From positions 124,001-188,000 of the forward strand of contig NIVC01001511.1 of the NCBI GenBank assembly GCA_002269645.1: a DNA stretch of 64,000 nucleotides, written 5' to 3'. The translations under genes and the position numbers were made by a program. This DNA comes from Macrostomum lignano. Lineage: Eukaryota. This document shows, piece after piece, positions 8,189 to 63,788 of this stretch (position 1 is the first letter of the stretch; every line of letters begins with the position of its first letter). The notes under the pieces are model-generated. The model did no database searches. It saw nothing but the letters and a program-made list of their open reading frames with translations, and had not been told where the DNA came from.

Positions 8189-11100
8189 CAATCCACCACC
8201 CACCACAGACCCCCCTCCCGTCCCGACGTACACGTAACGACCATGCACACCAACCAATCACAACACGAAGGGGAGAGAGCTGAGAAAGCTGCATGGCTGG
8301 CACCATGGCCCAGCCAATCAGCTCTGCGCAGCTCCCAGAGCCTGGGCTAAAAAATAATAAATTATTACTGCCTGCAAATATAAATTAGGTCAAGGCTGCA
8401 GACGAGAGCATGGGGGGATGCAGACGCACTGAACCATGCAGCGACTGAAAATTGCAGAAAATAACCCATTTATGTATACATGTACATGTAAAAGCGTATA
8501 TAGCAAGTCCTTATGCATTCAACCTCGACGACGTCTACATGTAAGATGAGGTTTACATGTATTCTATATTCTTACGCATTTGATATGCTCCCTATACTAG
8601 TATTCGCACCACCAAAATAACTCAGTATTGCATTGTTATTCAACCCTATAACAGGACGCATAATAAAATGACTTTAAAGAAGTTGAACGGAGCACAAAAG
8701 GTTCTCAAAAGATGCATGGTGCAATCTGACTTTCCGGCTTAAAGGCTCATTCACACTGCCATCAAAAGAGCCACCAATTTACACGAAAAAATGTACCAAG
8801 GAATAAAATTTTATGTGCAAGTTGTGTAATCACGCAAAATTTAATCGTACATGTATTTGATGGCGAAGCGGAGATGGTAATGGACTGAAGGAAAACTGCA
8901 AGGTGACTAGAGGAAAAAATGTTTTGGGTTTTTATAAATTGATAAATATTTATCAGCTAAAAATTAGAATATTACTTAGCAGTAATTAAACACTGATAAA
9001 ATTTTGTTATTCTATTTATGTGGCCATTAGAATAGATTCGGTCGTTGCAGTTTCTTATAAAATTAAGCTGACATCAAATGAATGAGAAAACTTTATCAAT
9101 GTTTTCGTTGTTTTCCTGTTAATAATGGCATAGTAGACGGCCTCCCGTTAGCGTCTTTTTATCATCAAGTGCCTTACTTTGTGAGCTTGTAGAGCTAAAT
9201 CAGCAGATGGCTGACGACGAATTGGAAGAGGACATCACAGGGAATGGAAATGGAATCAAATTGGAAGAGTAAGTAGGGATTTTTACTAATATACTTTGTC
9301 TTTATGAGCTTATTTTAGTATTTTTTCGTATATAATACTGATCTTTTAATAGAAAATGAAATAAAAACAATAGATGTAATTTTATAAATGATATTACAAA
9401 CACAATTTGTTACTAAAATTAAATAAATATTTGAATACAAAATTTTAGTTGTTTTCCTTTCATTTTATTTTATTCCAATGCATAATTTCTATATTTCTTT
9501 AAAAAAACACTAGTTCTTACCTTTTTGACTTAAATTGGCTCACTGGATTCCCTAACTGCGATAGGGCCTAGGCCTATCTAAGACGTTAAGAAGTATAATA
9601 AAAACTGGTTTTGTACCATAGTCAAGAAGGTGGCACAGTGTGCGCCGGAATAATTTTTTGGGGACAATTTGTGCATGTGCACCATCTATGTGCCATCTAT
9701 GCGCCATTTGTGCACTCTGTGTGCCGTCTGTGCGCCACTCTTCACAAATAGAGTTTTCTAAGAAAGGCCTTCGTACAAAAGCCTTTTTAAAATGTTACGC
9801 ATATTTTCATTTTAAACAAACTTAAATTATACCTACAAATAGGGTAATGCAAAATTGAAATTTTTAGCAATTATTTATACTAATTTTATTTACTGTTAAT
9901 TTTAAAGAAGCAAAAAGTTTATCACTGACTTTCTAGACTATACAAATCTCCTTTATTTTATGTAAAATTGTTAATTTGCATTATAATTTTCATGCATGTT
10001 AGGAACCTTATGCGCCACATGTGCTAGGGACCTCAGTGTGTGCCATGATTGTGGGCGCATGACCAAGACCGCCACACACCAAGACCGCCACACACCAAGA
10101 CCGCCATAGCTCTTACTGGCTACTGGAATTGAGGGGGAGCTACTAATCTTCCAGCATTGCTATTGGTTATGATGGGTTGTGGAGTTAGATGAGGAGGAAG
10201 CGTCCCAAGATTGGTCACGAATAAGTGGCCCAAAACGATTGCAAGTCAACCAGGGCAATTTTAACAATATCTTTAACAAAACCACAATTTGTTACTTTTA
10301 GCAGTAGATGAGCATGAATAATGCTTTTGATAGCAAAAGCTTGAGTAATTAGATTTAACTTCACTTTCAAAAAAGTGCCTCTCAAAATGCAATTGCAGGT
10401 TGCTGTAATTTGAAAAGTTTTTTATGAGCTCGCACATTCGTATATTCGGCGTCTGGGTGCGTAGTGCATTACGACAAACAAATTTAAGCGTCTTGATATG
10501 TGCTATGGTATGTGGATTTAGAGGTGCCATTCATTTTGACGAAGGTTTACATGTATTTTGATGAAAGCAAGTTAACAACTATCGTTCACTCACATAACAG
10601 AAAAAGCGCATCTTAGGCCCAATGCCTATGATATGTTAAACATGTCTGGAAATGTATGAGCATGAGCACTGTGTATTTTATTGTGTACTCAAAGCCGGGA
10701 ATTTCGGAGAAAGCAAAGAGAGGGGATGAGAGTAAATTTACATGCACATGTAATGAGAGAATATATGGAGAGGGGTTAGGAGATCTTGATCTCTCTCACT
10801 CTCACTCTCTCTGGCTCACTCATTTTATACCCACTCCCACACTGACACACTCTCACTCTCACTCTCTTACTCACTCATTCACTCACTCACTCGCTTTTAA
10901 TTCATTTCTGAATTTCAGGCACTATAATAAATTACAGTATATTTCATACATTTGATCTTTTGCCTCCAATTTTTAAATGCAAATATCCTTTACTCTCGCG
11001 CACTGCGGCAACTTTGCACAGGTATAGTGTGAACAACTTGTACATGCATTTTTTCAAAGGGTACTGATTGATAAATACTGATTTTGACAATTCTGACATC

Positions 11101-13079
11101 TCTTCAAAATATAACAAACTTATTGATACATTTAATGTAATAAATGTAATACAGAGATGCACATATGTGTATATGAGTGCAAGGTACATGTACAAGTACA
11201 CGTTATCCAATCTATCTGTGACGTTTTTTCCAGCCAATCAGGAATTATCAATAGCAGTCAAATTTTTGCAGCTGAAATCACATTCAGCGTTAGGCAAAAA
11301 GGAAATATTTGCGAAATCAAAAAGCCGTTTTTAAAGCACTGCAAACTGTGGTCTGAGCCTTGCCACTCGCAAATAAGTATTGCGGTGCGATGCGCTCCGT
11401 TTATATTTCGGGAGTCCATGCGGTGGAGATGCTTGAATTAGGTGAAAAATCTGCAAACTTGAAGATATCAGTGGATAGGGCAGATCGAAGGGAGATTTGC
11501 GAACAAATTGTTAGAAAACAATGGTTGCATACTTTTGCAAAATGCTTGCTGCATTCATCTGTTAGTACAGTTGTAGCTAGTATCGGACATGCGAAATATG
11601 CAAAATACCATAAGATCGGACCAATGGCACAATCATTTTTTATTTTAGATAGACTTCTTTTAGTCCCATCAAAGTTTGCATGTACTTCTGAGGTCATGAC
11701 CTCATGCTCATGCTATACTTGGCAGATCCAGGTTTTCGCTCCTGCAGGGACCTCGCTTGGTTGCACTATTACACATGGGAACACCAACTGCAATATAGAT
11801 GCCACGCCCACATACGCTCGTACGTTGCTCAGAATTTAATTGAATTCAATCTGATCACACTATATTGAATACCCGCAGCTATTTTGGAATATTTGATAGC
11901 TATATCTCTAATGCCGGCCCCTCGTAAAAAATCTGTTACTATCCAAATCTTTTTTGTGCCCTCCTTTTGAACTCAGTACATTAATTGGAACTCACAGTTA
12001 TATATACAAACAGTTTTTTTAAGCTCGACTCAAGTCCATGCAGTTCAGGGGTTGCACCCAGAGGGGGAGGGGTCAAGGGAGGAAAATTCCGGGGTCTGCC
12101 CCCTCTTGCCAGTGCCACCTCTCTCCGTAACACCCCGCCCCCCTAAAATTTTTTGAGTGCGCCCCTCGTTCCATTTAAAATTTATGGCTTGGTATTTTAA
12201 AAATGCACAGCCATTGCATATAGCCTATAAGCGATGAATTTCAGAACCTATAAGAGATAACAAGTTAAGTACAGCTGTTTTTGTTACTATACAATCTATT
12301 CGTGGTAACTGGGTGGAGAGTATTTGCTTCCTGTCTTGATTTAATAAGAACCCTGAGACAGTTGGCTAACCAAGCCAGCTGTCAATGCATTCATTCTAAA
12401 AAGTGATAAATTTTTGTTACCTTGCCTGACAATATGCTATTGCTGGAGTAGCTAATTTATGATAGTGTTATGCAAAGCTGGAAAAGACGTCGCTTTGATT
12501 TAAACTATCAGAAGGAGAGACAAAGATGTGGTAGAGAGGGATCACAAACAGAGATGGGGTCGTGTATTGAAATTAAATTTGAACTTTTTGCGCAAGCTAT
12601 TCTGTGCGCAGTTTAAACAGTGATTATGCAATCTAGTAGTTCTACCTCATTAGTACATGCAGATATAGTAATTTTAGCATATTATTAGAGATTTAGTATA
12701 TTTAGACTAGAGCGCTATGGACAAGCAAACATACAAATCTTAGAGATTTAGTATATTTGGATTTTAAGAAAATCGGTCAAGGACAGTGAGCTCTAGAGCT
12801 TTATAGACAAGCAAGCAAACAAACCTTAGAGATTTAGCATATTTGGATTAGAGATTAAGTATAAATAAGTGCCACATTGAGTTAGGGCTCGAGATGACCT
12901 ATGGAGCTGGCAGCACATTTCGCTTTAAGCACGGTGTAAAAGTTTAAGATCTTGTTATTCGCGCTCACAAGCCAAATGTGCCCCCGCTTCCACAATCTAG
13001 CAGGGGGTGCAGTGAAATAAAACTGGAGGGGCAGTGGATAAGATGCAAGCAAATTTAGCGAATATGCAGATTTTTTCTT

Positions 13080-13510
13080 TTTTACCTGTGGGCCACATAT
13101 GGACTGAAATAAAAGTGCAGAATGTAATGGCATGCAAAAAATGATGGCGTTTAGAAGGTAATAATTAATAGCTTTACCTGTGCACTGCATATGGACTGAA
13201 ATAAAAGTGCAGAATGTAATGGCATGCGAAAAATGATGGCATTTAGAAGGTAATAATTAATAGCTTTACCTGTGCACGGCATATGGACTGAAATAAAAGT
13301 GCAGAATGTAATGGCATGCAAAAAATGATGGCGTTTAGAAGGTAATAATTAATAGCTTTACCTGTGCGCCGCATATGGACTGAAATAAAAGTGCAGAATG
13401 TAATGGCATGCGAAAAATGATGGCATTTAGAAGGTAATAATTAATAGCTTTACCTGTGCGCCACATATGGACTGAAATAAAAGTGCAGAATATAATGGCA
13501 TGCGAAAAAA
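13080..13510. repeat. 92-bp tandem repeat, ~4.7 copies, just downstream of the MULE transposase
   Basis: TACCTGTG anchor at 13083, 13175, 13267, 13359, 13451. Confidence 0.95.
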
Positions 13511-13630
13511 TGATAATGAGGGAGCTATTTGCTAAGCAAGCAATGAATTGAGATTTATAACTCAATTTAAGTAAAATGGTTAATTATTAAAAGTTGCCAC
13601 TTGAATCAGGCAAAACGGGAGAGATTGCAA

Positions 13631-15489
13631 TCAATTCTGCTGCGCATCATCCTCGCCCTCTTGCTGCCATCCAGGTTGCGCAGGAATATGGCTGCAGGCC
13701 CGGAGAAATGCAGCAATCGACATAGTGCCCTCTCTCAGGTGTTGGCAGAATGTCTCAAAGCAGACATTCACTCGCGCGTACCTAGCATGTACTTGCTGGT
13801 GGTGCGTGACAGCTTGGCCTTGATGAACTTGCTGCAGCAGACGTTGCACCCACTCTGCATCACGCTGAAGCAGGGTCAGCAGAAGATAGAAATTAAGCGC
13901 TTTCTCTCCACACTTGTTGAGCTGCGCGTGCCAAGCCTCCACGGCATTGTTCATCCTTGTGAACCGCTCAAAGACGCAAATGGCATCCCGGTCCCACACA
14001 GGGTGCTATAGCCAGGTTGCACGCACATATTCCGTTAGCTCTAGAAGGCGCTGATTCTCTCCTGCCATTGCAGTGCAGGCTGCAAGGCCATCTAGCATGC
14101 AAGGAGCCGGCAGACAAGGAATCGAAAGCAGCATGCATACTAATAACTTTACCGCAGGGGAAGTCGCATACTGCACCTGCAATCCAAGAGACTGGACTCG
14201 CCTGAAAACAGCCTGGCAGTAATGAAAAAAGCAGCCACGAACTTGGGCTGCTGGATAAACTAGCCGAATGGCTTGCCAGGCGGCCGACTCAAAGTCGCAG
14301 ATAAATTGGACAGGTGCATTACCAGTCAACTCCCATACCTGCCGGAAGCAGGCTTGGTAGTCAGCCTGAGCCTTACCTGACATCAGAAAGAATGCCAGTG
14401 GTACCAGACGCTCTTGATTGTCGCAGCGAATGGCTCCATGAAGGCTGTACAGCTGCATGAAAGGCGCCTTGACAATGCTGAATGTGCCATCACAGTGCAG
14501 AATGCGTCGTGTGGACAGGATCTCCCGTTGTGTTGCAGACATGAAGACAAAGTGCCGTCCATTTGTCTCTGGCACAGTAACGTCCTGCAAATGGAACTCT
14601 GGGGGCACGTGCTCGGATCAACCTGAAAATGGATGTTAGCTGGCTCCGCGGGGCGGCTTTTTTTACGAGAATAATTAGCATTGCGACTTAAGGAATCTAT
14701 ATTAATCACTGCCTGCACTTCTTGGGGGAGCTCTCTTACTTTCTCCTCAGCGATGATGCCAGCAGATTTGAATGGCGCTCGCTTTGCTTCCGTTTTTACC
14801 TGAGCTGCAATACGTGGTTTTTTAACTGGCTGATCGACTGGATCGCAGGTGTGCTCTTTCAAGGCTTCAATGGTTCCGTCTTGTCGCTTGACGGCTGAGC
14901 CCAGGCATTTCGGTGCAGTTTTGTTGCAACGGTAGTAAGTGTTGCCATTTCGCCGGCTCTTGACATGCATCAAGCAGCCAAGATCACGCCTGACGTACTG
15001 CACTAGCAAGTCTTTGCCGTGGCTTAATCCAGCACCTGGAAAATGCTCAAAAGCCTGCGGCGATGGGCTACGAGGCGGCGCCAACTCTGCTGGAGGCTCG
15101 TGAATTGATTCTTCGAGCACAGGTTCAGCATCAGCGAAATCGGGATACTGAAATAAAAACCTCTCTTCCACTTCTACATGAGGGACTGGAAGCAATGGCT
15201 CCTCTTGGTCAATAGGCTCACCACCTGGTCCTGATCCTAGAAAGGTTGGCGGCACAGTAGCTGCTGGGGCAGCTGAAGGTGCAGATGAAGGCACACCTGT
15301 AGTTGGCCTAAGGCATCGGTTGCACAGCCAGAAAAACTCGCGTACACGTTTCATCGCAGCGTACTGCTCCGGTGTAACGCGACTGTTACACGCACGATGC
15401 TGCCATTCGCTACACTGCGAGCACTCAATAGCTTCCTCTCCATTGACAACAGGCTGTACACACACTACACATAGGTATGCACCTGCCAT
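13631..15489 (-). mobile_element. Disrupted Mutator-like (MULE) transposase with N-terminal PHD finger and FLYWCH-like domain
   Basis: C4HC3 PHD (CVVC..CSQC..WQHRAC..WLCNRC); FLYWCH-like YYRC..C..EHTC; MULE core ILHCDGTF, FICDFE, GCFFHYCQ, RMNNAVEAWH. One frameshift near 14608 and an in-frame TAG at 14006-14008. TIRs not found. Confidence 0.9.
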
Positions 15490-30510: not shown

Positions 30511-30665
30511 TGTAAGACAGACACACAGTAAGACCGACAGGCTGGCAGACAGACGTACTAACACAGGCGTACAGGCGCAATGCACACAAAGACCTTGATA
30601 TTTGCACGAAAAAAGACGCGCAGGTAAGCAGGGACGCATCAATGCTATCCCCATTGTGCCCGCAG

Positions 30666-31478
30666 AACTCACCCAACTACGACCCGGAGCTAGAGAGCTG
30701 CGAGTTCTACCATCCCAGCCACAGGGAGGAGCGCGTCGAGGAGCTGAAGAGCCGCCCAACCGGGACCTACTTCCTTCGGCCGAGCGCCAAGAGCCGCAGC
30801 GTGTCCGTGCTCTGCGTCAATTGTAACGACGCTATAAAAAAATTCGAAATCGAGAGAATCCCGGGCGGCTTCAATCTGTCCGGCAAAGCATTTCGCACTA
30901 TTGACGAAGTCATCCAGCGCTACTCCGTTAAGTACATCGACGAGAAGAACGAGGTGAAGTTGCGCGAGCCGCTGCTCAGACGGAGTCACGCCGCATCCAA
31001 CCTACCGCAGGAGGACATCTACGCTCCCAATCGGGCTTCATCAACTCAGATTCGGGAGTGCCAGCTGGCCGCCGAGTTTCACTGCCTGTTCCCGAAGCGT
31101 CGGAGTCGGCAGCGGGCCTGGAAACGGCAGCGCTGCATTCTGCATCGGCGGCAGGACGAGAATCACGAGGTGCTGATCACGTCCAGCTCGGAGGTTGGCA
31201 GGCAGCCGAAGGGCAAGCCAAAAGGCTTGATAGCGTTGGAGTTCGCTCACCTGTACCCTGTGTGCCACGGCGCTTATGACAGGCCGCACTGCCTGCAGTT
31301 GGTCATCTTCAATGAGGTGTCTGCGAATTCGACACCGCCTGATGTCTACGTGCTGGCGGCCGACTCGCAGGCTGTGCTGGCCGAGTGGCTGGCCGCTCTC
31401 AAGCCGCTGTGCAAGTGCAGCAAGGTGTGCAACCACGGCCAGAGGAGCGGGCACGTCAGGCATGTCAGCACGCTGGAG
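30666..31478 (+). CDS. RASA1: p120 RasGAP exon: second SH2 + PH
   Basis: EFYHP..GTYFLRPS..FRTIDEVIQRY; PH ending VLAADSQAVLAEWLAAL; CAG/GTGAGC, phase 0. Confidence 0.92.
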
Positions 31479-31499
31479 GTGAGCTGATTAGGTTTGTCG

Positions 31500-41331: not shown

Positions 41332-44300
41332 TGGCCCTGGGCTCTAGCCAGACACTGCATTTAATACGTATGACTAAGCTCCACGCTGCCAAAGGAGCGA
41401 CATTCTGTCTGCAAATAAATTTACAGCATTGCGTATCTGCGTCAGTAAATCTGATGAAGATTGCTGAGCTGTACAGGCCAGGCCTCATCCTGATCCAGGA
41501 ACCCTGGATGCGCAACGGTAAGTTGCCCAACATTCCCTCTGGCTACTCTGAATTTTGTGTGTGGCCCGGGGAACAACCGCCCTAGAGCGACTATCCTCGC
41601 TGCTAGCCATCTCCAGGCTTGGCTGAGGACTGATCTCTCTGATGGAGACCTTTGTGTCATCCAATCTAATCATTTCTCTCCGCGTACGTGTCTTGTTGCC
41701 TCGGTTTATATCCCAGGCGACAGAGACCCTGCTCCTGAGAGTTTACTGCGCCTCGCGCAGTACTGCAAGTCCCAGAACGCTGAGCTGTGCTTAGGGGGTG
41801 ACCTCAACGCGCACCACAAGCACTGGGGCAGCAAAAGATACCAACACTAGAGGAGAGGAGCTTCTGGCCCTCATCTCTAACACAAACCTCATGCTCTGCA
41901 ACCGCGGCAGCACTCCTACCTTTAATAATGGCAGATGGACCGAGGTCCTCGACGCCACACTCGTTACCCCAAGACTCTTTGACAGAGTTGAGGAGTGGAG
42001 AGTCTGGTCTGAGGAGCCCTCCCTGTCTGACCACTGCTTTATCGCCTTTAATATCGCGGACACTAAAACCCAGTCTCCGATCACTTGGAGGCGCAATATC
42101 CGCAACACTGATTGGGCGGCCTACAAGGCTGCCCTTGATCTGCACCTGCAGGAACTCACGGACTTACGTCCGATTGAGACCTGCGAGGATGTGGATCATA
42201 TGGCTGAGACGCTGACAGGTTGCATTATTGCAGCCTACGAAGCGGCTTGTCCTGCTCGCGCCTACAAAGGCAAGACCTCGGCGCCGTGGTGGAACCCAGA
42301 GCTGGGGAAACTCAGGCGGAAGGCCAAAAGCCTTCATCGCCGTGCCATGAAGACCGGAAACCCGGAGGACATGGAGCTTTTCCGGCAAGCCTCCCGCAAT
42401 TTCAAATCTGAAGTGCGCAAGGCCAAGGAATGTAAGTGGCGCCAATTCTGCAATGATTTGGATCAAGACAGACCTACTTCTAGGCTTGTCAAGGCCCTTA
42501 CAATAGACAAAATGTCCAAATTAGCCATGATCAAAAAATATGATGGCTCTCTTACTAAAGACCCTGAAGAAGTGCTTCAGCATATGCTCAGCACATTCTT
42601 CCCGAGGGTACCTACTGCTAGACCGGAGCCCAACCATTCGATGGAGACCTAAGAATGTGCTGAGCTGAAGACCTAATCGCTCGTGCGGTCAGAACCTTCA
42701 AACCCTTCAAATCTCCTGGACCTGATGGTATCTACCCTGTTCTCCTTCGTGAAGCAGCCAAGATACCCTCGTTCCTGAGACTCACCCGCAATCTTATGCG
42801 GGCCTCTATCCAGCTGGGATACGTTCCCAAATGCTGGACTGAAGCTCGGGTAGTCTTTATTCCCAAACCTGGGAAGGGTGACTACCAAAGCGTCAAGGCC
42901 TTCCGGCCAATTAGCTTAACGTCAGCAATGCTTAAGCTCACGAGAGGCTTATTCTCTGGCGGCTGCTCTCCTGCGAGCTGACAGCGATGCCCCTCAGCAA
43001 TAATCAGCACGCCTTCCGTACCGGGAGGTCGACTGACAGCGCCCTGCATGCGATTGTCGAGAAGATTGAACGGGCGGTACTGGGTGACGGTTACGCCCTG
43101 GCTCTCTTTCTTGACATTGTTGGCGCCTTCGACAACGTTATCTTTGAAGCGTTTCAGAGGGCCCTTCAAAATCGCAAAGCTCATGCTACCCTCATACGGT
43201 GGATCATGTACATAATCTCCAACCGTACGGTCACTGCCCAACTTCTTGGGCAAACTGCCTCCACCAGAGTCTGTAAGGGTGGACCCCAAGGCGGAGTCCT
43301 CACCCCGACGCTCTGGAACCTGGTCATGGACGCTCTTCTGAGTGACTCCCGACCCGACCCCGTCTTCAAAGTCGGGTATGCTGATGACGTCACGGCCATT
43401 GTGGCAGGACCGTCTCCCAGCACGCTCAGGGATCTGATGCAGAGCTTTATCCGCAAAGCAGAATCCTGGGCCAATGACAATGGTCTGGAACTCTCTGAGC
43501 CCAAAACCGTTGCCATTATGTTTACCAGCAGACTACGCTGGAACATACGTCCTCTGCAGCTCTACGGCAGAGATATTGCCTTCGCGCACCAGACCAGATG
43601 TCTCGGGGTCATACTTGACCACCGGCTCAACTGGTCCTTCCACGCGAAAGCAAAAGCCAAGCGTGCCTCAGCCATCCTGGCCCAGCTCCGACGAGCACTT
43701 GGCACTTCTTGGGGTCTATCCCCAAAGCGGCTTTGGTGGATCTATACTTCCGTAGTTAGACCTGCCATTACGTACGCCTCTGTTGTCTGGGTTAGCGCTA
43801 CCCAGGTCAAAAGCCATGCAGACCTGCTCAACAAGATCCAAGGCAGAGCGTGTAGGCTCATCTGCAACGCCACCAGGTCCACGCCCTTTGCTGGCATGGG
43901 GGCCTTCCTTAATCTACCGCCTCTTGACCTCTTCGTCAGGGGTGAGGCGGCTAGAACGACGCGGCGTCTAATTGATGCCGGCGTCAAATTCATTTACATG
44001 AGAGCACCTGCTAAGCGGAACCTTGTCCCGCATAGCGACCTGTGCCTCAACTTTCTCAACGAGTGTCAGGCCAATCGCGTCTTCACCGATGGCATTGCCT
44101 CAACGCTCAACCTGAGACAGCGCTACTCCGTAGCTATCGACTCGCGCGATAACATCAATGACCAATGGAACCCTGGTGAGCTTCATTGCTACACCGACGG
44201 TTCTAAGCAGTCAGCCAACACCGGCTTTGGTGTTGGAATCTTTCTGAACGGGAGGGTCATCGCTACCCACGCTCAATACACTGGGGTCAACTCCAGTGTT

Positions 44301-45102
44301 TTCCAAAATGAAGTTCTGGCCATCAGCTCCTGCACTGCAGAGCTTCTCGCCACTGGCGTTATTGGCAAGAACATCATTTTCCATTCGGACAGCCAAGCTG
44401 CCTTGCACGCCATCAGTGGCTGCAGCACCAACTCTGCTACAGTCCTCGACTGTATCAAACTTCTCAACGTGTTGGGTTCCGCCAACAAAATTACCCTTAA
44501 GTGGGTTCCGGGGCATGTGGGGATCCGAGGAAATGAGTTGGCTGACTGACACCCTTGCAAAAGTTGGTGCCTCCGGCTCCTCTCTCGGCCCCGAACCCCT
44601 TGTCCCGATTCCTGGCTGTGTCATCGACTCGCGCATCAAAGCGTGGATCAGGACTCAGCACCGCTCGACTTGGGCGAACCGCACGAACTGCAGGCAATCC
44701 AGAGGCGCTGTCCCTCAGCCCTCTCACCAGCTCCGGAAGCTCCTCTTGCGCCTCTCGCGCAGAGACATCCGGGCTGCCACCATGACCCTCTCTGGTCACG
44801 GCTGCTTCTCCAGGCACCAGTACCTGCAGGGCAACGCCACCAACAACACCTGTAGTTTCTGCAACTCAGGTGACGAAACTGCTGAGCATTTCGTCAGCAT
44901 CTGTCCCGCCTTCACGCGGGCCAGACTCACTTACCTCGGGCCACACACATGTATTACTGAAGCGTGCAAACCCGAAAACTTTAATCAGCTCATGCGCTAC
45001 CTTCGGGCCACCCGCAGGGCTGAACTCTCCTTTCCAGAGAGCACTATAGCTGCTGGCGACACTGGGGGACCTCCCTGGGCGGCGCCAACCCTCCGTCCAT
45101 AG
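41328..45102 (+). pseudogene. ORF2 pol (AP endonuclease, reverse transcriptase, RNase H, CCHC zinc finger), broken by several frameshifts
   Basis: LQINLQH, LIQEP, GDLNAHH, SDH (APE); FRPISL, FLDIVGAFD, QGGVLTP, YADD (RT); YTDGS, QNEVLAI, HSDSQAA, WVPGH..GNELAD (RNase H); CSFC-x8-H-x4-C. Confidence 0.95.
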
Positions 45103-51863: not shown

Positions 51864-53084
51864 TCACCTGACTGTCAAGTCAGCGTCGCGGTCGACACGG
51901 TCAACGTCTTCAGCCTCGTGAACTTCGCATTCGGTTTCAGTAGTCCCGTTATTTGAGGCGGCGGCGCCAGTCTCGGCAATCATCGCAGCCTCCTGATTGG
52001 TCCCGGTGGCCTCGTTGTTGTCCTCCGTCAGGTTGTCATCCTGAATTCCGTCCTCAGGTCCGACGTGGCCACCGTTCTGACGCTGGCGGCTCTTGTCGAC
52101 GGTGGAGTACCGGTAGGACGTGTTCAGCCGCGAGTCACTCCGAGCGGCATTGGGGGGCCGCTTCGGGAACAAGCAGGGCAGGATGTTGCGGAACTCGTTC
52201 TGGAAGTTGGCGTTCATCCAGCCGTACAGGAACGGGTTGTACATCACGGAGCTCATGGCCAGCAGGTGGCACACGAAGAAGAGGCTGCGGAACAGGCCCT
52301 CCGAGGTTATGCCGACATCGTTCAGCATCCACAGCAGGTTCAGCGGGATCCAGCACACCACGAAGATGACCACCATGGCGATGAGCATCCGGTTGGTGCG
52401 CCGCTTCCTGCGGATGTCCAGCTCCTCCTTGCTGCGCGACTTCTTGGCCAGAGTTTTCTTGTGGCGATTCTTCAAGCTGATGCTCACCTTGGAGTAGCAG
52501 GCCGTGATGATGGAGCAAGGAATGAGGAACTGCAGCACGAAGCTGATCACGGTGAAGACTGGCCGGTATTCGGGCTTCCAGTCCTCCACGCAGCTCTCCG
52601 TTGCCGCCTCGTCCGAAGACTTCACGCGCTGGAACACGGCGATGGGCAGGCTGATGAGCACGGCCACCAGCCAGATGATCACCACGATGAGCAGGCAGAG
52701 GCCCGTCTTCATCCGGGGCACGAACGGGTGCACAATCATGCAGTAGCGTTCAACGGCGATGGCCGTTGAAGTCAGGGTCGACACGTACACGGAGACGCCC
52801 ATGGTCATCGGCATGAGCTTGCACACTGCGCCCGGCAGCGTCCAGGTCTGCATGAACATCACCGTCGGCGTCAGCGGCACGTTCACCGTGCTCATGATGA
52901 CGTCAGAGATGGCCAGGTTGGTGATGAGGATGTTTGTGATGGTCTGCATGCTGCGCTTCCTCAGTACAACTGTGATCACCAGCAGGTTGCCCAGGGTGCC
53001 GAGCATGCAGATGATGGAGTAGAACAGGACGCACAGCGACTTCATCCACATCGGGTGGGTGGGGATGGTCGCGTTGTGGCTCAT
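51864..53084 (-). CDS. Intronless class A GPCR, neuropeptide Y/F / PrRP-receptor-like (~406 aa)
   Basis: GN(TM1), NLAISD(TM2), AVERY(TM3), W(TM4), FLIP(TM5), CWIP(TM6), CHLLAMSSVMYNPFLYGW(TM7); start MSHNAT with an N-glycosylation site is preferred over upstream non-ATG starts. Confidence 0.95.
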   Translation of the reverse strand: MSHNATIPTHPMWMKSLCVLFYSIICMLGTLGNLLVITVVLRKRSMQTITNILITNLAISDVIMSTVNVPLTPTVMFMQTWTLPGAVCKLMPMTMGVSVYVSTLTSTAIAVERYCMIVHPFVPRMKTGLCLLIVVIIWLVAVLISLPIAVFQRVKSSDEAATESCVEDWKPEYRPVFTVISFVLQFLIPCSIITACYSKVSISLKNRHKKTLAKKSRSKEELDIRRKRRTNRMLIAMVVIFVVCWIPLNLLWMLNDVGITSEGLFRSLFFVCHLLAMSSVMYNPFLYGWMNANFQNEFRNILPCLFPKRPPNAARSDSRLNTSYRYSTVDKSRQRQNGGHVGPEDGIQDDNLTEDNNEATGTNQEAAMIAETGAAASNNGTTETECEVHEAEDVDRVDRDADLTVR

Positions 53085-53329
53085 TGCAGGCGGGCGACTC
53101 GGTCTGGGTTTAATGGAATGGGTGGCTACGCGTGTATACAGACAGCACTCAGCAACGGTTGAGGCTGACCCCGCCTGACTCGGACAGACATTATCAGTCA
53201 GAAGACGCGGGTCACGAGCACGCAAAAGTGGCGTCCGTGGTGGTGGCATCAGGGAGGCGCAGCCAGGTACTTTCCTATGTTTGCATGCAACCCGGAGTTC
53301 GATTCCTGCTCGCGCGGTCACATTACTGT

Positions 53330-53505
53330 GAAATGGCGCCAGAGCTATATACTGTGGAATGGTGCCAGAGCTATACACTGTGGAATGGCGCCAGAGCTAT
53401 GCTGTGAAATGGCGCCAGAGCTATACTGTAAAATGGCGCCAGAGCTATACTGTAAAATGGCGCCAGAGCTATACTGTAAAATGGCGCCAGAGCTATACCG
53501 TGAAA
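53330..53505. repeat. 24-bp repeat upstream of the GPCR
   Basis: Unit AAAATGGCGCCAGAGCTATACTGT. Confidence 0.9.
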
Positions 53506-55100: not shown

Positions 55101-55911
55101 CATGAAACCCTCCCCCCGACAGACATGGCAACACAAATGTTTCAAGCTCACCAAATGCAAGGCAAAAATCTGTTGTCCAGAATTGAAAAATAGCTTTAAC
55201 TGAAATTCAACCAAAGACATTGATTTAATAAACAGGATCCAAGCTTAAAGTACTCAAATCCTATTATGAGAATCAGAAGAAAGCTTCTCAGATCAACTCA
55301 CCCGCTGAGAGCAAATCCTTGAGCAAAACTGCCGCCGCCCACGTTTTGCCTTCTCATTCTGTCTCTTTTTTTCAAATCCCCTTTAAAACCCTTCGCCCCC
55401 TGCCTCTCGGATCCCCGATTTTTCTTCCCCGCACTCGCACCGTCTCCTGCCCAGACAGCCAATCCGCTAAGCAGCAGCATCTAGAAAAGGTGAGCCCCGT
55501 CTGCTCAAAGGGAGACGGTAGAGATGGAGGAGTTCGAAGGAATGAAGACGGGAAGGAGTGCAGAGGGGGACAGGAAAACAGTGGAATTTGGCAGCCAATA
55601 GCAGTGCGGATGGGGGGGGGCGAGTTTCACTTGTTTCAATTGCTTCCCCCGTGTCTACATCAGCTCCCTGCCTTCACCCTGTGTTCCCCGCGCGTCTTTT
55701 GAAGTCCCCGCTGCTCCTGATGGGCCTCTCGAAAGCGATGTCTGTGTGGGTGGGTGGGAGCGCAGCTAAGCAGCTTCTCCGTCACTCTCACTCACTGCCT
55801 CACTGCCGAGATGCGGAAAAACAATTTCTGAAAGGATTTCATTCCAAATATTCTAAAAATAGTTCTCTTGATTGTATCGCGTTTCTGTGTCTCTGCCTGC
55901 TAGAAGAAGAT

Positions 55912-56275
<364 letters not shown>

Positions 56276-56837
56276 CCCCAAGCCCTTAAAAACGAAGAGC
56301 TCGAAATCCGACAGCGCCTCGTGCATCTCTTTGATCCTTCGCGAAGAAAATGCTTACAGGATGAGATTAAAAACAGGGTGATTAAAGGCCGCTCTTCATT
56401 TAGCCCTCGAAAACAGCTTTTGCCTCATCACATCACCCCAGCCTGTCCGGAGCCGGGGGGGGGGGTTCGCGTGATGGGGATCTACAGATAGAGTCGCCAT
56501 TAGCCTGGGATTAGCACGCCACTTCCCTCTCTCCTCGCCCTCCTTCCTCAGTGATTCGATCTGCCCGAAAATGGATATTAAATTTTTATTCATCTGGGCC
56601 ATCACGAGATGGATTAAATGAGCTTTTAATCTGCCTAAAGAGCCTTCGAAAAAAGCAGTGGCTCTCCGTTGTCCGGTCAAGACTAACAGTTGGGTAGCTG
56701 AGGCAGCTGAGAAAACAGGATAAAATAGAATCGGATTTAGTTGCATTTAAAAAGATTTTTCTGGTTTTTGAAGGCCTCAAATTTCGATTTAAATGTGGCT
56801 TGGAAAATTACATATTTACCTGCCAGGTTTCGAGGGC

Positions 56838-59172
56838 ACTCAGATCCCACACTGTCTCACTCAGATCCCGCACTGTCTCACTCAGATCCCGCACTGTCTC
56901 ACTCAGATCCCAAACTGTCTCACTCAGATCCCAAACTGTCTCACTCAGATCCCAAACTGTCTCACTCAGATCCCAAACTGTCTCACTCAGATCCCACACT
57001 GTCTCACTCAGATCTCACACTGTCTCACTCAGATCCCACACTGTCTCACTCAGATCCCACACTGTCTCACTCAGATCCCACACTGTCTCACTCAGATCCC
57101 ACACTGTCTCACTCAGATCCCACACTGTCTCACTCAGATCCCAAACTGTCTCACTCAGATCCCACACTGTCTCACTCAGATCCCACACTGTCTCACTCAG
57201 ATCCCACACTGTCTCACTCAGATCCCACACTGTCTCACTCAGATCCCACACTGTCTCACTCAGATCCCACACTGTCTCACTCAGATCCCACACTGTCTCA
57301 CTCAGATCCCGCACTGTCACTCAGATCCCACACTATCACTCAGATCCCACACTGTCTCACTCAGATCCCACACTGTCCCACTCAGATCCCACACTGTCTC
57401 ACTCAGATCCCACACTGTCTCACTCAGATCTCATACTGTCACTCAGATCCCACACTGTCTCACTCAAATCCCACACTGTCTCACTCAGATCCCACACTGT
57501 CTCACTCAGATCCCACACTGTCTCACTCAGATCCCACAGTGTCACTCAGATCCCGCACTGTCACTCAGATCCCACACTGTCACTCAGATCCCACACTGTC
57601 TCACTCAGATCCCACACTGTCACTCAGATCCCACACTGTCTCACTCAGATCCTACACTGTCTCACTCAGATCCCACACTGTCTCACTCAGATCCCAAACT
57701 GTCTCACTCAGATCCCACACTGTCTCACTCAGATCCCAAACTGTCTCACTCAGATCCCACACTGTCTCACTCAGATCCCACACTGTCACTCAGATCCCAT
57801 ACTGTCACTCAGATCCCACACTGTCTCACTCAGATCCCACACTGTCTCACTCAGATCCCACACTGTCTCACTCAGATCCCACACTGTCTCACTCAGATCC
57901 CACACTGTCACTCAGATCCCATACTGTCACTCAGATCCCACACTGTCTCACTCAGATCCCACACTGTCTCACTCAGATCTCACACTGTCTCACTCAGATC
58001 TCACACTGTCTCACTCAGATCTCACACTGTCTCACTCAGATCCCACACTGTCTCACTCAGATCCCACACTGTCTCACTCAGATCCCACACTGTCTCACTC
58101 AGATCTCACACTGTCTCACTCAGATCCCACACTGTCTCACTCAGATCCCACACTGTCTCACTCAGATCCCACACTGTCTCACTCAGATCCCGCACTGTCA
58201 CTCAGATCCCACACTATCACTCAGATCCCACACTGTCTCACTCAGATCCCACACTGTCTCACTCAGATCCCGCACTGTCACTCAGATCCCACACTGTCTC
58301 ACTCAGATCCCACACTGTCTCACTCAGATCCCGCACTGTCACTCAGATCCCACACTGTCACTCAGATCTCACACTGTCTCACTCAGATCCCACACTGTCA
58401 CTCAGATCCCATACTGTCACTCAGATCCCACACTGTCTCACTCAGATCCCACACTGTCTCACTCAGATCCCACACTGTCTCACTCAGATCCCACACTGTC
58501 TCACTCAGATCCCACACTGTCACTCAGATCCCATACTGTCACTCAGATCCCACACTGTCTCACTCAGATCCCACACTGTCTCACTCAGATCTCACACTGT
58601 CTCACTCAGATCTCACACTGTCTCACTCAGATCCCGCACTGTCACTCAGATCCCACACTGTCACTCAGATCCCACACTGTCTCCTCAGATCCCGCACTGT
58701 CACTCAGATCCCACACTGTCACTCAGATCCCACACTGTCTCACTCAGATCCCACACTGTCACTCAGATCCCATACTGTCACTCAGATCCCACACTGTCTC
58801 ACTCAGATCCCACACTGTCTCACTCAGATCCCACACTGTCTCACTCAGATCCCACACTGTCTCACTCAGATCCCACACTGTCACTCAGATCCCATACTGT
58901 CACTCAGATCCCACACTGTCTCACTCAGATCCCACACTGTCTCACTCAGATCTCACACTGTCTCACTCAGATCTCACACTGTCTCACTCAGATCTCACAC
59001 TGTCTCACTCAGATCCCACACTGTCTCACTCAGATCCCACACTGTCTCACTCAGATCCCACACTGTCTCACTCAGATCCCACACTGTCTCACTCAGATCT
59101 CACACTGTCTCACTCAGATCTCACACTGTCTCACTCAGATCTCACACTGTCTCACTCAGATCCCACACTGTC
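56838..59172. repeat. 21/19-bp minisatellite (CTCAGATCCCACACTGTCTCA)n
   Basis: Direct; explains the three ~830-aa ORFs. Confidence 0.98.
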
Positions 59173-59624: not shown

Positions 59625-60042
59625 TCAGATCTCTTTCAACCGATTCTCCAGCTCAGGAAAGGCCATTAGCAGCAGCATTTTGTTATACTTCATGACGCTT
59701 TTCACCGAGTCAAACGACACGGAATGACCTGTGAACCAGGTGCGCCTGAAGCCCTGCACTTGGTCAAGGATTCGCCACAGAACCCCATCGGCGATTTCCG
59801 GTATGGTGTATCGAGGCATGTAGTTGAAGGTTATTGAGGCCAGGGTGTCGCCACTAGCCAGGGGGTCGTGAGCTTCCGGCGCTGTCTGCAGGTCGCTGCT
59901 TGAGCCTTCCGAATTGGAGTAGCCTGACAGGTAGTAGGCTACGATGGTGGAGGAGGCTGGAGTCTCCGGGCTTCGATTGAAATCTGGCGAGTTCAGAGCC
60001 AGTTCGGAGTTGCGAATGGCCAGGAGCCGATCGAGACTGGGG
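59625..60042 (-). CDS. PUFA-isomerase-like oxidoreductase, exon 4 (stop)
   Basis: FNYMPRY..QVQGFRRTWFTGHSVSFDSVKSVMKYNKMLL; acceptor phase-compatible; spliced total 1566 nt = 521 aa + stop. Confidence 0.85.
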
Positions 60043-60119
60043 CTGCGGATTGCCGTGCGGGGGTTGATATTAGGGGGGTGCAGACTGTGAGTAGAGGGTG
60101 TAACTGTGAAGGATCGCCA

Positions 60120-60265
60120 CAGAGGGTGTAGAATGTGAGTTGAGGGTGTAGACTGTGAGGGGAGGGTGTAGACTAATAGTAGAGGGTGTAGAATTTGAGT
60201 GGAGGGTGTAGACTGTGAGTGGAGGGTGTAGACTGTGAGTGGAGGGTGTAGACTTTTAGTGAAGG
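60120..60265. repeat. ~20-bp intronic repeat (GAGGGTGTAGACTGTGAGT)n
   Basis: Direct. Confidence 0.85.
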
Positions 60266-60321
60266 GTTTCGATTGAAGCTAGAGATGGAGCTGCTGCAGA
60301 CAATGGATTTCCATCACATAC

Positions 60322-60665
60322 TTCTCCGTGTCCAGCTGGTCCAGGTAGTAGGCCACAGGGTGGGCCGCCACTTCCGGTTGACCGGAAAAGCGCACCAGCT
60401 TAGTCAGAAACTTTCTGGACTTCAGTCTGGAGAACACATCCTTCTCGGCCGGGGTCAGGTCATCCAACAGGCCGCCCGTGACCGCCTGCGCGCTGGGAGT
60501 CCACACCAGCCAGTCCACCGTCTCCATGCTGTTGTCAAGGAGTCGAATCTTGATGGGACGACCACCGCCACCACCGCTCCTGCTGACACCAACGACACGA
60601 CTGTTCATGCGGAACTGCACACCGCCAGCCAGCTGGAGACGGTCGCGCGCCGACTCCCAGAAAGT
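60322..60665 (-). CDS. PUFA-isomerase-like oxidoreductase, exon 3
   Basis: TFWE..FRMNSRVVGVSR..VDWLVWT..AEKDVFS; CAG/GTATGT; phase 2. Confidence 0.82.
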
Positions 60666-60769
60666 CTGGGTGGATAGAATTCAATAATAACGATATGAAA
60701 TGAGAGCTAAGATGGCCAGTTTACACTCTGGTGCTTTGGAGTGGGGTAGACTTTGGATTGAAGACAAGA

Positions 60770-61400
60770 TCGTCAATGTACAGTCTAGCTTTGGTGGTAT
60801 TGGGGTGGGGTAGGAATTAAAGATAAGCTCGCCTATGTACAGTCTAGCTTTGGTGGTATTGGAGTGGGGTAGGAATAGGAGATAAGATCGCCAATGTACA
60901 GTCTAGCTTTGGTGGTATTGGAGTGGGGTAGGAATAGGAGATAAGATCGCCAATGTACAGTCTAGCTTTGGTGGTATTGGAGTGGGGTAGGAATACGAGA
61001 TAAGATCGCCAATGTACAGTCTAGCTTTGGTGGTATTGGAGTGGGGTAGGAATAGGAGATAAGATCGCCAATGTACAGTCTAGCTTTGGTGGTATTGGAG
61101 TGGGGTAGGAATAGGAGATAAGATCGTCAATGTACAGTCTAGCTTTGGTGGTATTGGAGTGGGGTAGAAATAGAAGATAAGATCGTCAATGTACAGTCTA
61201 GCTTTGGTGTTATTGGAGTGGGGTAGAAATTGAAGACAAGATCGTCAATGTACAGTCTAGCTTTGGTGGTATTGGAGTGGGGTAGAAATGGAAGATAAGA
61301 TCGCCAATGTACAGTCTAGCTTTGGTGGTATTGGAGTGGGTAGGAATAGGAGATAAGATCGCCAATGTACAGTCTAGCTTTGGTAGCATTGGAGTGGGGG
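60770..61400. repeat. 59-bp intronic minisatellite, ~10 copies
   Basis: CAGTCTAGC anchor at 60781, 60840, 60899. Confidence 0.95.
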
Positions 61401-61480
61401 AGGAATCGAAATGGGTTGAAGATGGCAAGTAGAGCAATCTGTAATCACCTAATACAGAGCACAAGAATGGTCGGGCGCAC

Positions 61481-61894
61481 CTGGAATCCCTTGCGCAACA
61501 TGCCGAGCCTGGACTCCTTCCGGGGCACCAGCAGGTCAGTCAGGTAGGCCTCCGACATCCACATGAGTCCGTAGAGAGCGGAGGTGTCGCTGGGACTGCC
61601 GTAGCCCATGGCGGTCATGCCGAACAGAAAGTAGGGCTCCAGAGCCAGCAAGCCGTTCTTCTCCAGATAGCTGAGCGCGCTGCAGTTCAACTTGGCCAGC
61701 GCCTCGCTTGACGGCTGGGCCAGCGGGAACTCCAGGAAGTCCGGCTGCTGGGCCGGATAGAGCTTTGAGCGCAGGCGGATGTAACGCTGACTGGCCTGCA
61801 GAATGTGCTGCTTGACCTCCTCATCGGATGCGTTGGGCCGCAGCGTTGGATCCAGGCGTCGAACCCTGCCGAACACGAACTGCTCAAGGTCCAT
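61481..61894 (-). CDS. PUFA-isomerase-like oxidoreductase, exon 2
   Basis: YLEKNGL..GMTAMGYG..GFQ; TAG/GTGCGC; 414 nt, phase 0. Confidence 0.88.
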
Positions 61895-62061
61895 CTAGAA
61901 GTTGGAAAAGTTTCTTTCCTAACTTACGGATTTGCCACTTACTGGAGTGGTTGGAACCGTGATCGGAGACAGTTCTGCTCATTCCACTGCCTCCTGAGCA
62001 CACAAGCACGCCAAGACTGCACGCAGGCACCCACTCGTGCACACGCTCACACAGAGTGCAC

Positions 62062-62440
62062 AGGGGCGCCAGCACCAGGGGCTTTAGCACCAGGGGCGCC
62101 AGCACCAGGGGCTTTAGCACCAGGGGCTTTAGCACCAGATGCTTTAGCACCAGGGGCGCCAGCACCAGAGGCGCCAGCACCAGGGGCGCCAGCACCAGGG
62201 GCGCCAGCACCAGGGGCGTCAGCACCAGAGGCGCCAGCACCAGGGGCGCCAGCACTAGGGGCGTCAGCACCAGAGGCGCCAGCACCAGGGGCGTCAGCAC
62301 CAGAGGCGCCAGCACCAGGGGCGCCAGCACTAGGGGCGTCAGCACCAGAAGCGCCAGCACCAGGGGCGTCAGCACCAGAGGCGCCAGCACCAGAGGCGCC
62401 AGCACCAAGGGTGCCATCACCTGGGGCGCCAGCACCAGAA
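62062..62440. repeat. 15-bp intronic minisatellite (GCACCAGGGGCGCCA)n
   Basis: Direct. Confidence 0.95.
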
Positions 62441-62537
62441 AAACTTGTGAACCAGCGCAGGATCAGAACAGCGCAAAATTCAGTGCTACTGAAAACTCGC
62501 AAGTTTCGAGTTCAGGATCGCGGCCGACAGCTCATAC

Positions 62538-62927
62538 CTGGCGAGCGGATGGCTCAGACGATTCTCTGATCACCGCGGCAGGCAGGGTGGCTTCATCCAG
62601 ATCGTAGCCGATGCCCTGAGCCATGCGGCGCAGGTCTCGGTAGTCGCTGCTCACGTAGCAGGTGCCCAACTCGTGCGGCAGCGGGTCCGCCTCCGAGACC
62701 TTCAGCGTGACGGAGCGCCCGCCGACCCGGCCGGAGGACTCCAGCACGAGGAGATTCTTGAAGCCCAGACTGCGGAGCAGGTAGGCCATATGCATCCCGG
62801 CTGGGCCGGCGCCCACAATGGCCACCCTCGAAGACCGGCTGGGCCGCTCGGCAGCTGTCGGCAGGCAGGCGGCGTCATGGTTGCTAAGCAACTGCAGCAG
62901 CAACAGCAGCAGCAGTGATGATGTCAT
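62538..62927 (-). CDS. Secreted FAD-dependent oxidoreductase / PUFA-isomerase-like, exon 1
   Basis: Signal peptide MTSSLLLLLLLQLL; Rossmann RVAIVGAGPAG..VLE..RVGGR..ELG; donor GTATGA, phase 0. Confidence 0.92.
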
Positions 62928-63788
62928 GCTTTATCACTCGCCTTATAGTCTCTAAATCAGCTGTTAGGAATAATTAGTTTAAATGAGTACAATTAGCAGG
63001 CTAGCAAGCGCAAAACTCTGCTGTGAGAAAAGACTTAATAAGGGCCTATAAGTCGAGGCTCTTATCGGAAACCCCCCCACCCCCTAATGCAGCAGCTCAA
63101 TGGGCCGGCCCCTGCCATGTGTTATTGTTCCATTGTTTGAAGGCAAAATAATTTGTGACAGGAGTTGGCGATTATTTATGACTGATAATAAAATACTCAC
63201 GATTCCAGAGTTCGACCGGATTGCCCCCCATGCGGGATTGCGTGCGCACTACTTGAAATTAATTCTGTCACTTTTTGCCAGGCGTTGTTGCTATTTATAG
63301 CTTTAGTTGACGTTTTACCGGCCCGCGAGATATGGCATGAGTTCGTGGAGGATCGCGGCAAAATTTGAAGTGCCATGCACTTGAGAAAAAAACTATTATG
63401 GCCGAGATTTGAAAAGCTGCACGAAATTATTCCACGGCTGATTGAACTGCTCGAAATCTGCGCAATTTTACCAGCAGGGATCGACTTTCGAAAAGCCAAT
63501 GAAATAACAAATTAATCGATTTAAATGATTTAATCGATCGATTTTTATCGATTTTTATCGATTTTCATTGAATTTATCAATTTTCATCGAATTTATCTAT
63601 TTTTTCGGACCTTTGAGATTTTTTCTCAGTTTTATCGATTCTTATCGATTTTTATTGACTTTCATCGATTTTATCGATTTTATTGAGCATATTCTTTAGC
63701 AGTTGCTAATCGGAGTCCAGATTCTGGGTTAGTTCGATGTGTTTTGTAATTTTTTTGCTAATGTAATTGCAAGACACGCACACGACTG

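Follow-up and report, generated by a model that had tools for sequence, protein, structure and literature searches.

Whether an animal may possess a secreted counterpart of the bacterial and red-algal polyunsaturated fatty acid isomerases, and whether it would have received such a gene from a foreign donor, are the questions raised by a four-exon gene of the flatworm Macrostomum lignano that is located on the minus strand at positions 59625-62927 of the window (the whole stretch of 64,000 nucleotides analysed here, which is part of contig NIVC01001511.1 of genome assembly GCA_002269645.1). A preliminary description of this DNA had proposed a secreted protein with a Rossmann fold for flavin adenine dinucleotide (FAD), resembling PAI, the isomerase of polyunsaturated fatty acids from Cutibacterium acnes, and the polyenoic fatty acid isomerase PFI of the red alga Ptilota rather than monoamine oxidases (MAO) or L-amino-acid oxidases (LAAO), and possibly acquired by horizontal gene transfer (HGT). 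The best explanation overall, to which we assign a probability of roughly 0.55, is a probably secreted FAD flavoprotein of the PAI type, isomerase-like in its function, that is not a foreign gene specific to Macrostomum. The family itself was known beforehand, the databases already listed the gene as a hypothetical protein, and one scallop relative bore the automatic label PFI-like; new are a specific placement of the flatworm gene in the family, backed by tests, and the finding that bivalve, hydrozoan and flatworm members, mostly with signal-like N-termini, make up an uncharacterised clade.

The gene model comprises four exons and three introns, all of the GT...AG type (splice junctions tested by script; all features of the gene lie on the minus strand). 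Exon 1 (62538..62927; 390 nt, codons 1-130, ATG at 62927) encodes a signal-like hydrophobic segment, the FAD-binding beta-alpha-beta unit with GAGPAG as dinucleotide-binding motif (62796..62813; codons 39-44), the conserved E63 and a GG motif; the putative signal peptide (MTSSLLLLLLLQLLSNHDAAC) corresponds to 62865..62927 (codons 1-21), its cleavage site being estimated by the -3/-1 rule. Beyond the phase 0 donor of exon 1 follows intron 1 (61895..62537; 643 nt, phase 0; CAG/GTATGA...TTCTAG). Exon 2 (61481..61894; 414 nt, codons 131-268) aligns to residues 121-200 of PAI and contributes a helical part of the substrate domain with the family motifs YLEKNG and TAMGYG...ALYGLMW; it is separated by intron 2 (60666..61480; 815 nt, phase 0; CAG/GTGCGC...ACCCAG) from exon 3 (60322..60665; 344 nt, codon 269 to two bases of codon 383), whose acceptor is ACCCAG. 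Intron 3 (60043..60321; 279 nt, phase 2; GAA/GTATGT...CCGCAG) precedes exon 4 (59625..60042; 418 nt, remaining base of codon 383 through codon 521, TGA at 59627-59625), which encodes C-terminal strands of the FAD domain and a helix, includes the motif QG..RTWFTGHSVSFDSV and aligns to PAI residues 359-422. The spliced coding sequence of 1566 nt yields a protein of 521 amino acids that is identical to the NCBI protein BOX15_Mlig024262g1 of M. lignano, annotated merely as "hypothetical"; the four phase-compatible exons originally described are thus upheld by the open reading frame (ORF), by canonical splice sites and by a database entry. The motifs quoted in that description (SRVAIVGAGPAG, ELG, YLEKNG, TAMGYG, GFQ/TFWE and YMP..QG..TWFTG..SF) are all present and in the stated order, with GFQ/TFWE being split by intron 2. 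The locus is a genuine nuclear gene of Macrostomum lignano.

Homologues reached an E value of 1e-55 against the single flatworm sequence, and two generic Pfam domains, Amino_oxidase and NAD_binding_8 (E 2.9e-9), passed their cut-offs, so that the similarity is far beyond chance; no other Pfam domain label was obtained, and the Amino_oxidase match (PF01593) covered only profile positions 2-259 of 443. The best match of the single sequence in the PDB was 2b9w, identified as the C. acnes PAI by its Foldseek description and by a 2026 paper, with the Rossmann stretch and, collinear with it, two weakly matching segments, one in the middle and one at the C-terminus. A profile built from an alignment of 22 homologues matched 2b9w with an E value of 2.2e-53 over PAI residues 4-77 and 121-422 of 424. 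MAO, LAAO and polyamine or spermine oxidases belong to the same superfamily and share the FAD-binding N-terminal fold; with the same profile, however, flavin monooxygenase, spermine oxidase, LAAO, putrescine oxidase and MAO reached only 1e-9 to 1e-13 (flavin amine oxidases: 1e-9 to 1e-12), and the oxidase alignments were confined to the Rossmann end, i.e. to the first 70-100 residues (query positions ~28-112). The matches ranking next after 2b9w had E values of 1e-12 to 1e-13. The exception among the weaker matches was the beta-cyclopiazonate dehydrogenase CpaO (PDB 9KP8/9VEX), which aligned over profile positions 30-343 (E 9e-12) and, outside the Rossmann region, comes second to PAI among the solved relatives. 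The alignment of the 22 homologues revealed that all family-invariant FAD columns (G39, A40, G41, G44, E63, G69) are intact in the flatworm protein, which possesses the GxGxxG motif, the acidic residue at the end of beta2 (E63) and the GG motif (G69-G70). From the same alignment an AlphaFold2 model with a mean predicted local distance difference test score (pLDDT) of 82 and a predicted template modelling score (pTM) of 0.86 was obtained; a structure prediction compared with PAI had been proposed as a check in the preliminary description, and the Foldseek comparison of the model with the PDB placed 2b9w first (E 2e-25, target-normalised template modelling (TM) score 0.85, root mean square deviation 3.8 Å), whereas the remaining matches, flavin amine oxidases included, had TM scores of at most 0.72 and deviations of at least 5.6 Å. 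The three-domain architecture of PAI is thereby confidently predicted for the flatworm protein. PAI is therefore the sole full-length match among solved structures, by profile as well as by fold, and both the proposed FAD Rossmann fold (GAGPAG, NAD_binding_8, intact FAD columns) and the preference for PAI over MAO and LAAO withstood the analysis: Within the superfamily of flavin amine oxidases, the flatworm protein is almost certainly a member of the PAI-type branch. A mollusc escapin/achacin-type LAAO was considered as well and ruled out, as the LAAOs align only at the Rossmann end.

PAI and the flatworm protein have the N-terminal GxGxxG FAD fold, the substrate-domain motif GYG...A.Y.L and the C-terminal QG..T.(F/Y).G in common. 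PAI differs in being cytosolic and bacterial and in beginning directly at the Rossmann fold; in comparison, the flatworm protein has a signal-like leader, approximately 100 additional loop residues, three N-x-S/T sequons for N-glycosylation, and introns in its gene. The hydrophobic N-terminal run ahead of the GxGxxG motif had a Kyte-Doolittle maximum of 2.99 within the first 40 residues and was predicted by AlphaFold2 as a helix (residues 3-15) followed by a linker of low pLDDT (14-26); in this respect, too, the earlier proposal of a secreted-type start was supported by the hydropathy heuristic. A signal-like segment of this kind, situated 30-75 residues before the GxGxxG motif, was found in most of the checked members of the animal-containing clade described below (exception: the Pecten model P0035), whereas the bacterial relatives start at the Rossmann fold and have no leader. 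Judging from these N-terminal features, secretory targeting of the flatworm protein is likely. The Ptilota PFI is a glycosylated flavoprotein with a signal peptide; like the flatworm gene it is eukaryotic, but it comes from a red alga instead of an animal. The link to PFI is an indirect one, being given solely by the NCBI name of the Pecten maximus member.

By analogy with PAI, whose mechanism is taken as established, the flatworm enzyme would enter the secretory pathway and take up a free polyunsaturated fatty acid (PUFA) or a lipophilic polyene of similar kind, which would be bound in a channel above the flavin; a double bond would then be shifted into conjugation by hydride transfer, transiently to N5 of FAD and back, with no net redox change. 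In PAI, a bis-allylic hydride reportedly moves to the flavin N5 and returns in such a redox-neutral manner. The two family members that are reported as characterised are both isomerases: PAI forms t10,c12-conjugated linoleic acid, and the Ptilota PFI forms conjugated trienes from eicosapentaenoic acid and arachidonate. PUFA-isomerase chemistry can be ascribed to the flatworm enzyme only tentatively, its odds lying somewhat below even.

Several points weigh against the explanation favoured here. The identity between the flatworm protein and PAI amounts to approximately 20%; PAI residues R88, F168 and F193, which we take to be the carboxylate gate and channel residues, have E, M and L as their flatworm counterparts and are variable throughout the family (PAI residues 4-423 were rebuilt from the alignments, and R88 is positioned in a poorly aligned loop). 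These non-conserved channel residues bear on substrate specificity rather than on family membership. Furthermore, only two members of a large family are characterised, the next-nearest solved structure, that of CpaO, is an oxidative cyclase, a literature search yielded no publication on any animal member, and the putative signal peptide was scored by the hydropathy heuristic alone; the points of the same kind that concern descent are given with the phylogeny below. The low identity to PAI and the non-conserved channel residues would also suit an enzyme that has the PAI-like fold and a different chemistry, e.g. an oxidase, dehydrogenase or cyclase that acts on a different lipophilic compound and, in net terms, hands electrons to O2 or some other acceptor. 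The sole family-level label in Pfam, Amino_oxidase, is consistent with such a function, as are the diversity of the family (914 clusters and many multidomain members) and the case of CpaO, a fungal enzyme that cyclises an indole alkaloid oxidatively, aligns far beyond the Rossmann region, has PAI as its closest structural homologue and has been described as a separate subfamily. However, the similarity of CpaO to the flatworm protein is far weaker than that of PAI; the PAI match spans the substrate domains in addition to the FAD domain, the resemblance to amine and amino-acid oxidases is limited to the Rossmann end, and both characterised PAI/PFI members are isomerases (although one is bacterial and one red-algal). 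A different chemistry on the PAI-like fold is regarded as rather unlikely, and the isomerase-like flavoprotein is retained as the preferred reading.

The family is large: A HMMER scan of 1.84 billion representatives yielded 914 clusters at E<=1e-30, a number that rose to 2503 with the looser cut-off of E<=1e-10. The taxa named in the following come from 30 clusters that were looked up out of the top 150 family clusters. Animal members were found in the scallops Argopecten irradians (two paralogues, XP_069114655.1 and XP_069114854.1), Pecten maximus (XP_033763411.1) and Ylistrum balloti (XP_060078027.1), in the oyster Saccostrea echinata (XP_061179497.1) and in the hydrozoan Hydractinia symbiolongicarpus (XP_057308028.1); other eukaryotic members were those of the chytrid fungus Terramyces and the amoebozoan Arcella. 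The Pecten maximus member (P0035) scored 463 bits against the family profile and bears the NCBI name "polyenoic fatty acid isomerase-like". The closest relatives of the flatworm protein (approximately 32% identity) originate from metagenome or SRA sequences; the two bivalve proteins that passed the BLAST cut-off are 27-28% identical, and bacterial relatives from a GTDB scan (Myxococcota, Mycobacterium angelicum, M. simiae and others) 24-29%. Some of the close relatives are intronless genes on gene-sparse contigs of 80-98 kb with 34-36% GC and with retroelements, which suggests that these contigs are eukaryotic DNA; over the wider set of closest relatives (P0003-P0016, P0030, P0045), the contigs likewise look eukaryotic, with few genes, 34-46% GC and retroelements. 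Two further word-index homologue searches, one with the full family alignment and one with a Rossmann-less alignment meant to keep generic FAD words from saturating the search, gave 17 and 4 matches, respectively, and no new named proteins; the Ptilota PFI sequence was absent from the returns of the homologue searches.

Some side observations concern the architecture and genomic setting of these relatives. In the region 9905-14447 of the eukaryote-like metagenome contig L002, the intronless homologue has a full ORF of 535 residues with a signal-like start; a reverse-transcriptase ORF is located just upstream, and a second tandem copy approximately 1.4 kb downstream is split into two ORFs and is probably a frameshifted pseudogene. 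In the family members P0036, P0042, P0048, P0060 and P0090 (790-1240 residues), a set of several members that includes the Arcella protein of 980 residues, the PAI-like module is positioned at the C-terminus of a much longer protein; multidomain fusions therefore exist in the family. In the bacterial gene neighbourhoods (metagenome-assembled loci of Myxococcota/deltaproteobacteria), esterase, polyketide-cyclase-like and beta-lactamase-fold proteins were present at one locus and nothing at the other; the ORF picks in these high-GC loci are unreliable, and no functional conclusion was drawn from them.

With respect to descent, a neighbour-joining (NJ) tree was calculated from 160 family members and 395 columns with 100 bootstraps. 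The M. lignano protein was placed within a clade of 41 leaves that holds all named animal sequences, and a clade including every named animal, to the exclusion of the chytrid, Arcella, PAI and the named bacterial sequences, was recovered in 73 of the 100 bootstraps. In scoring against hidden Markov models (HMMs) of the groups, M. lignano reached 215-253 bits with the eukaryote-type groups versus 153 bits with the bacterial/PAI group. The gene belongs to a eukaryote-type group of the family in which signal-like N-termini prevail and to which bivalves and a hydrozoan likewise contribute members. The introns of four animal homologues were mapped exactly in their genomic loci (chromosome-scale assemblies): All four genes contain introns; those of scallop and oyster have two introns in common, with identical phase, and a phase-1 intron of Hydractinia lies in the same variable loop as a phase-1 intron of the bivalves. 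An intron of M. lignano is situated in this loop as well, 36 residues before the (R/K)Y motif compared with 30-38 residues in the other animals, but in phase 0 as opposed to phase 1. The bivalve and Hydractinia homologues are accordingly similar to the flatworm gene in being nuclear and intron-bearing, in their NJ clade, in their mostly signal-like N-terminus and in the loop intron, and they differ in that their intron positions and phases are not identical to those of the flatworm. The coincidence of the loop intron across five animal genes is suggestive; the use of shared introns as proof of vertical descent was abandoned in view of the phase difference. As to the points on the unfavourable side that had been deferred, the tree is distance-based and does not include the Ptilota PFI, clade support is moderate, the exact 41-leaf clade was found in only 32 of 100 bootstraps, the group HMM scores fail to separate animals from the other eukaryote-type groups, and no intron position is exactly common to M. 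lignano and the other animals mapped.

These data bear on the possibility that the gene entered the Macrostomum lineage from a bacterium or an alga (e.g. from diatom or other algal food), gained its introns later, and has counterparts in bivalves and hydrozoans that were acquired independently. Such a course of events would be compatible with the patchy distribution in animals (bivalves, a hydrozoan and this flatworm only, among the clusters looked up), with the lack of an exactly shared intron position, with introns that are largely made up of minisatellite arrays and might be of recent origin, with close metagenome relatives that occur without introns on eukaryote-like contigs, and with a bootstrap value of just 73% from a distance method for the animal clade. 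On the other hand, the best bacterial relatives are only 24-29% identical and the bacterial group scored about 100 bits below the eukaryote-type groups; the NJ tree groups the flatworm gene with the other animal genes, the signal-like N-terminus is common to most of the eukaryote-type clade, and five animal genes possess an intron in the same variable loop. In addition, the codon usage is host-like: The G+C content at third codon positions (GC3) is 0.77 in the gene versus 0.79-0.80 in neighbouring host ORFs (a G protein-coupled receptor (GPCR) and an SH2-PH protein, see below), and the relative synonymous codon usage of the gene correlated with that of neighbouring host ORFs at r = 0.91, i.e. 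there is no deviation from the neighbours. The absence from other animals that would be expected after a recent transfer was not observed, since family members occur in scallops (three species), in an oyster and in a hydrozoan. The horizontal acquisition envisaged in the preliminary description is consequently not supported as a recent, Macrostomum-specific event, given the intron-bearing homologues of bivalves and Hydractinia, their grouping with the flatworm gene in the tree and the host-like base composition and codon usage; this scenario is improbable, and the gene is very probably not a recent HGT. It is possible that early animals or eukaryotes received the gene by an ancient transfer, or that there were several old ones.

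The gene sits among animal genes on a contig of 362 kb and contains spliceosomal introns, which indicates that it is physically integrated in host DNA. An ambiguity exists at the junction of exons 3 and 4: An alternative in-frame acceptor lies 42 nt upstream within intron 3, by which exon 4 would start at 60084 and the product would be extended by 14 residues (LHPPNINPRTAIRS) to 535. This acceptor falls within one of the degenerate units of the 20-bp repeat of the intron; its better polypyrimidine tract is that repeat copy itself. As the homologues have no match for the 14 additional residues, the 521-residue form was preferred and the 535-residue model was set aside, the latter being a possible alternative splice form. 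That the locus gives no functional protein, being a pseudogene, a contaminant or an artefact of annotation, is highly improbable, since the two in-frame acceptors and a second database model (P0002) with a different exon 3 donor are opposed by an open frame across four exons with canonical splice sites, the intactness of every family-invariant FAD residue, a confident AlphaFold2 model and the position among animal genes on a long contig.

To our knowledge, bacteria and algae are the only organisms credited so far with conjugated polyenoic fatty acid chemistry of this type, and we know of FAD-dependent, redox-neutral PUFA conjugation biochemically from two enzymes only, those of a skin bacterium and a red alga. 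In a wider and more doubtful interpretation, flatworms, bivalves and hydrozoans might keep a hitherto unrecognised clade of secreted PAI/PFI-type flavoenzymes that convert PUFA, whether dietary or endogenous, into conjugated polyenoic fatty acids serving as extracellular signalling, defensive or antimicrobial lipids; the clade might have reached animals by ancient transfer or go back to an old eukaryotic gene that most lineages have lost. If this were true, the animal (probably secreted) members would constitute a new class of animal lipid-modifying enzymes and a source of catalysts for conjugated fatty acids. The question is directly testable in M. lignano, which is tractable by RNA interference (by soaking) and transgenesis. 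The practical gain is modest: A "hypothetical protein" receives a specific and well-supported family assignment, and the idea of its horizontal origin is left unsupported.

In the surroundings of the gene, the nearest recognisable downstream neighbour is a rhodopsin-family GPCR, encoded by an intronless ORF of 504 residues on the minus strand (51864-53378; 7tm_1, E 6e-56). Further away, a remnant of a non-LTR (long terminal repeat) retrotransposon with endonuclease, reverse transcriptase and RNase H ORFs is located on the plus strand (41798-44549), and ORFs with SH2 and PH domains (30642-31487, plus strand) and with a PHD finger (14383-15489, minus strand) probably represent exons of ordinary animal genes; just past the window end, the NCBI annotation lists CCDC39 and a Myb gene. 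Each of the three introns consists mostly of a different minisatellite, namely 25 copies of a 15-bp unit in intron 1 (62061-62438), 10.9 copies of a 59-bp unit in intron 2 (60762-61406) and 7.3 copies of the 20-bp unit in intron 3 (60122-60267), which raises the question of intron growth or origin by repeat expansion. Upstream, a degenerate array of the 10-bp unit ATCGATTTTT (63537-63681) lies approximately 600 bp from the ATG. Downstream, an (AGAT)92 microsatellite occupies 55908-56275, and an array of 2.3 kb (56837-59172; 114 copies of the 21-bp unit CACTCAGATCCCACACTGTCT, 94% matches) lies approximately 450 bp beyond the stop codon; the latter creates spurious ORFs of more than 800 residues in all three forward frames.

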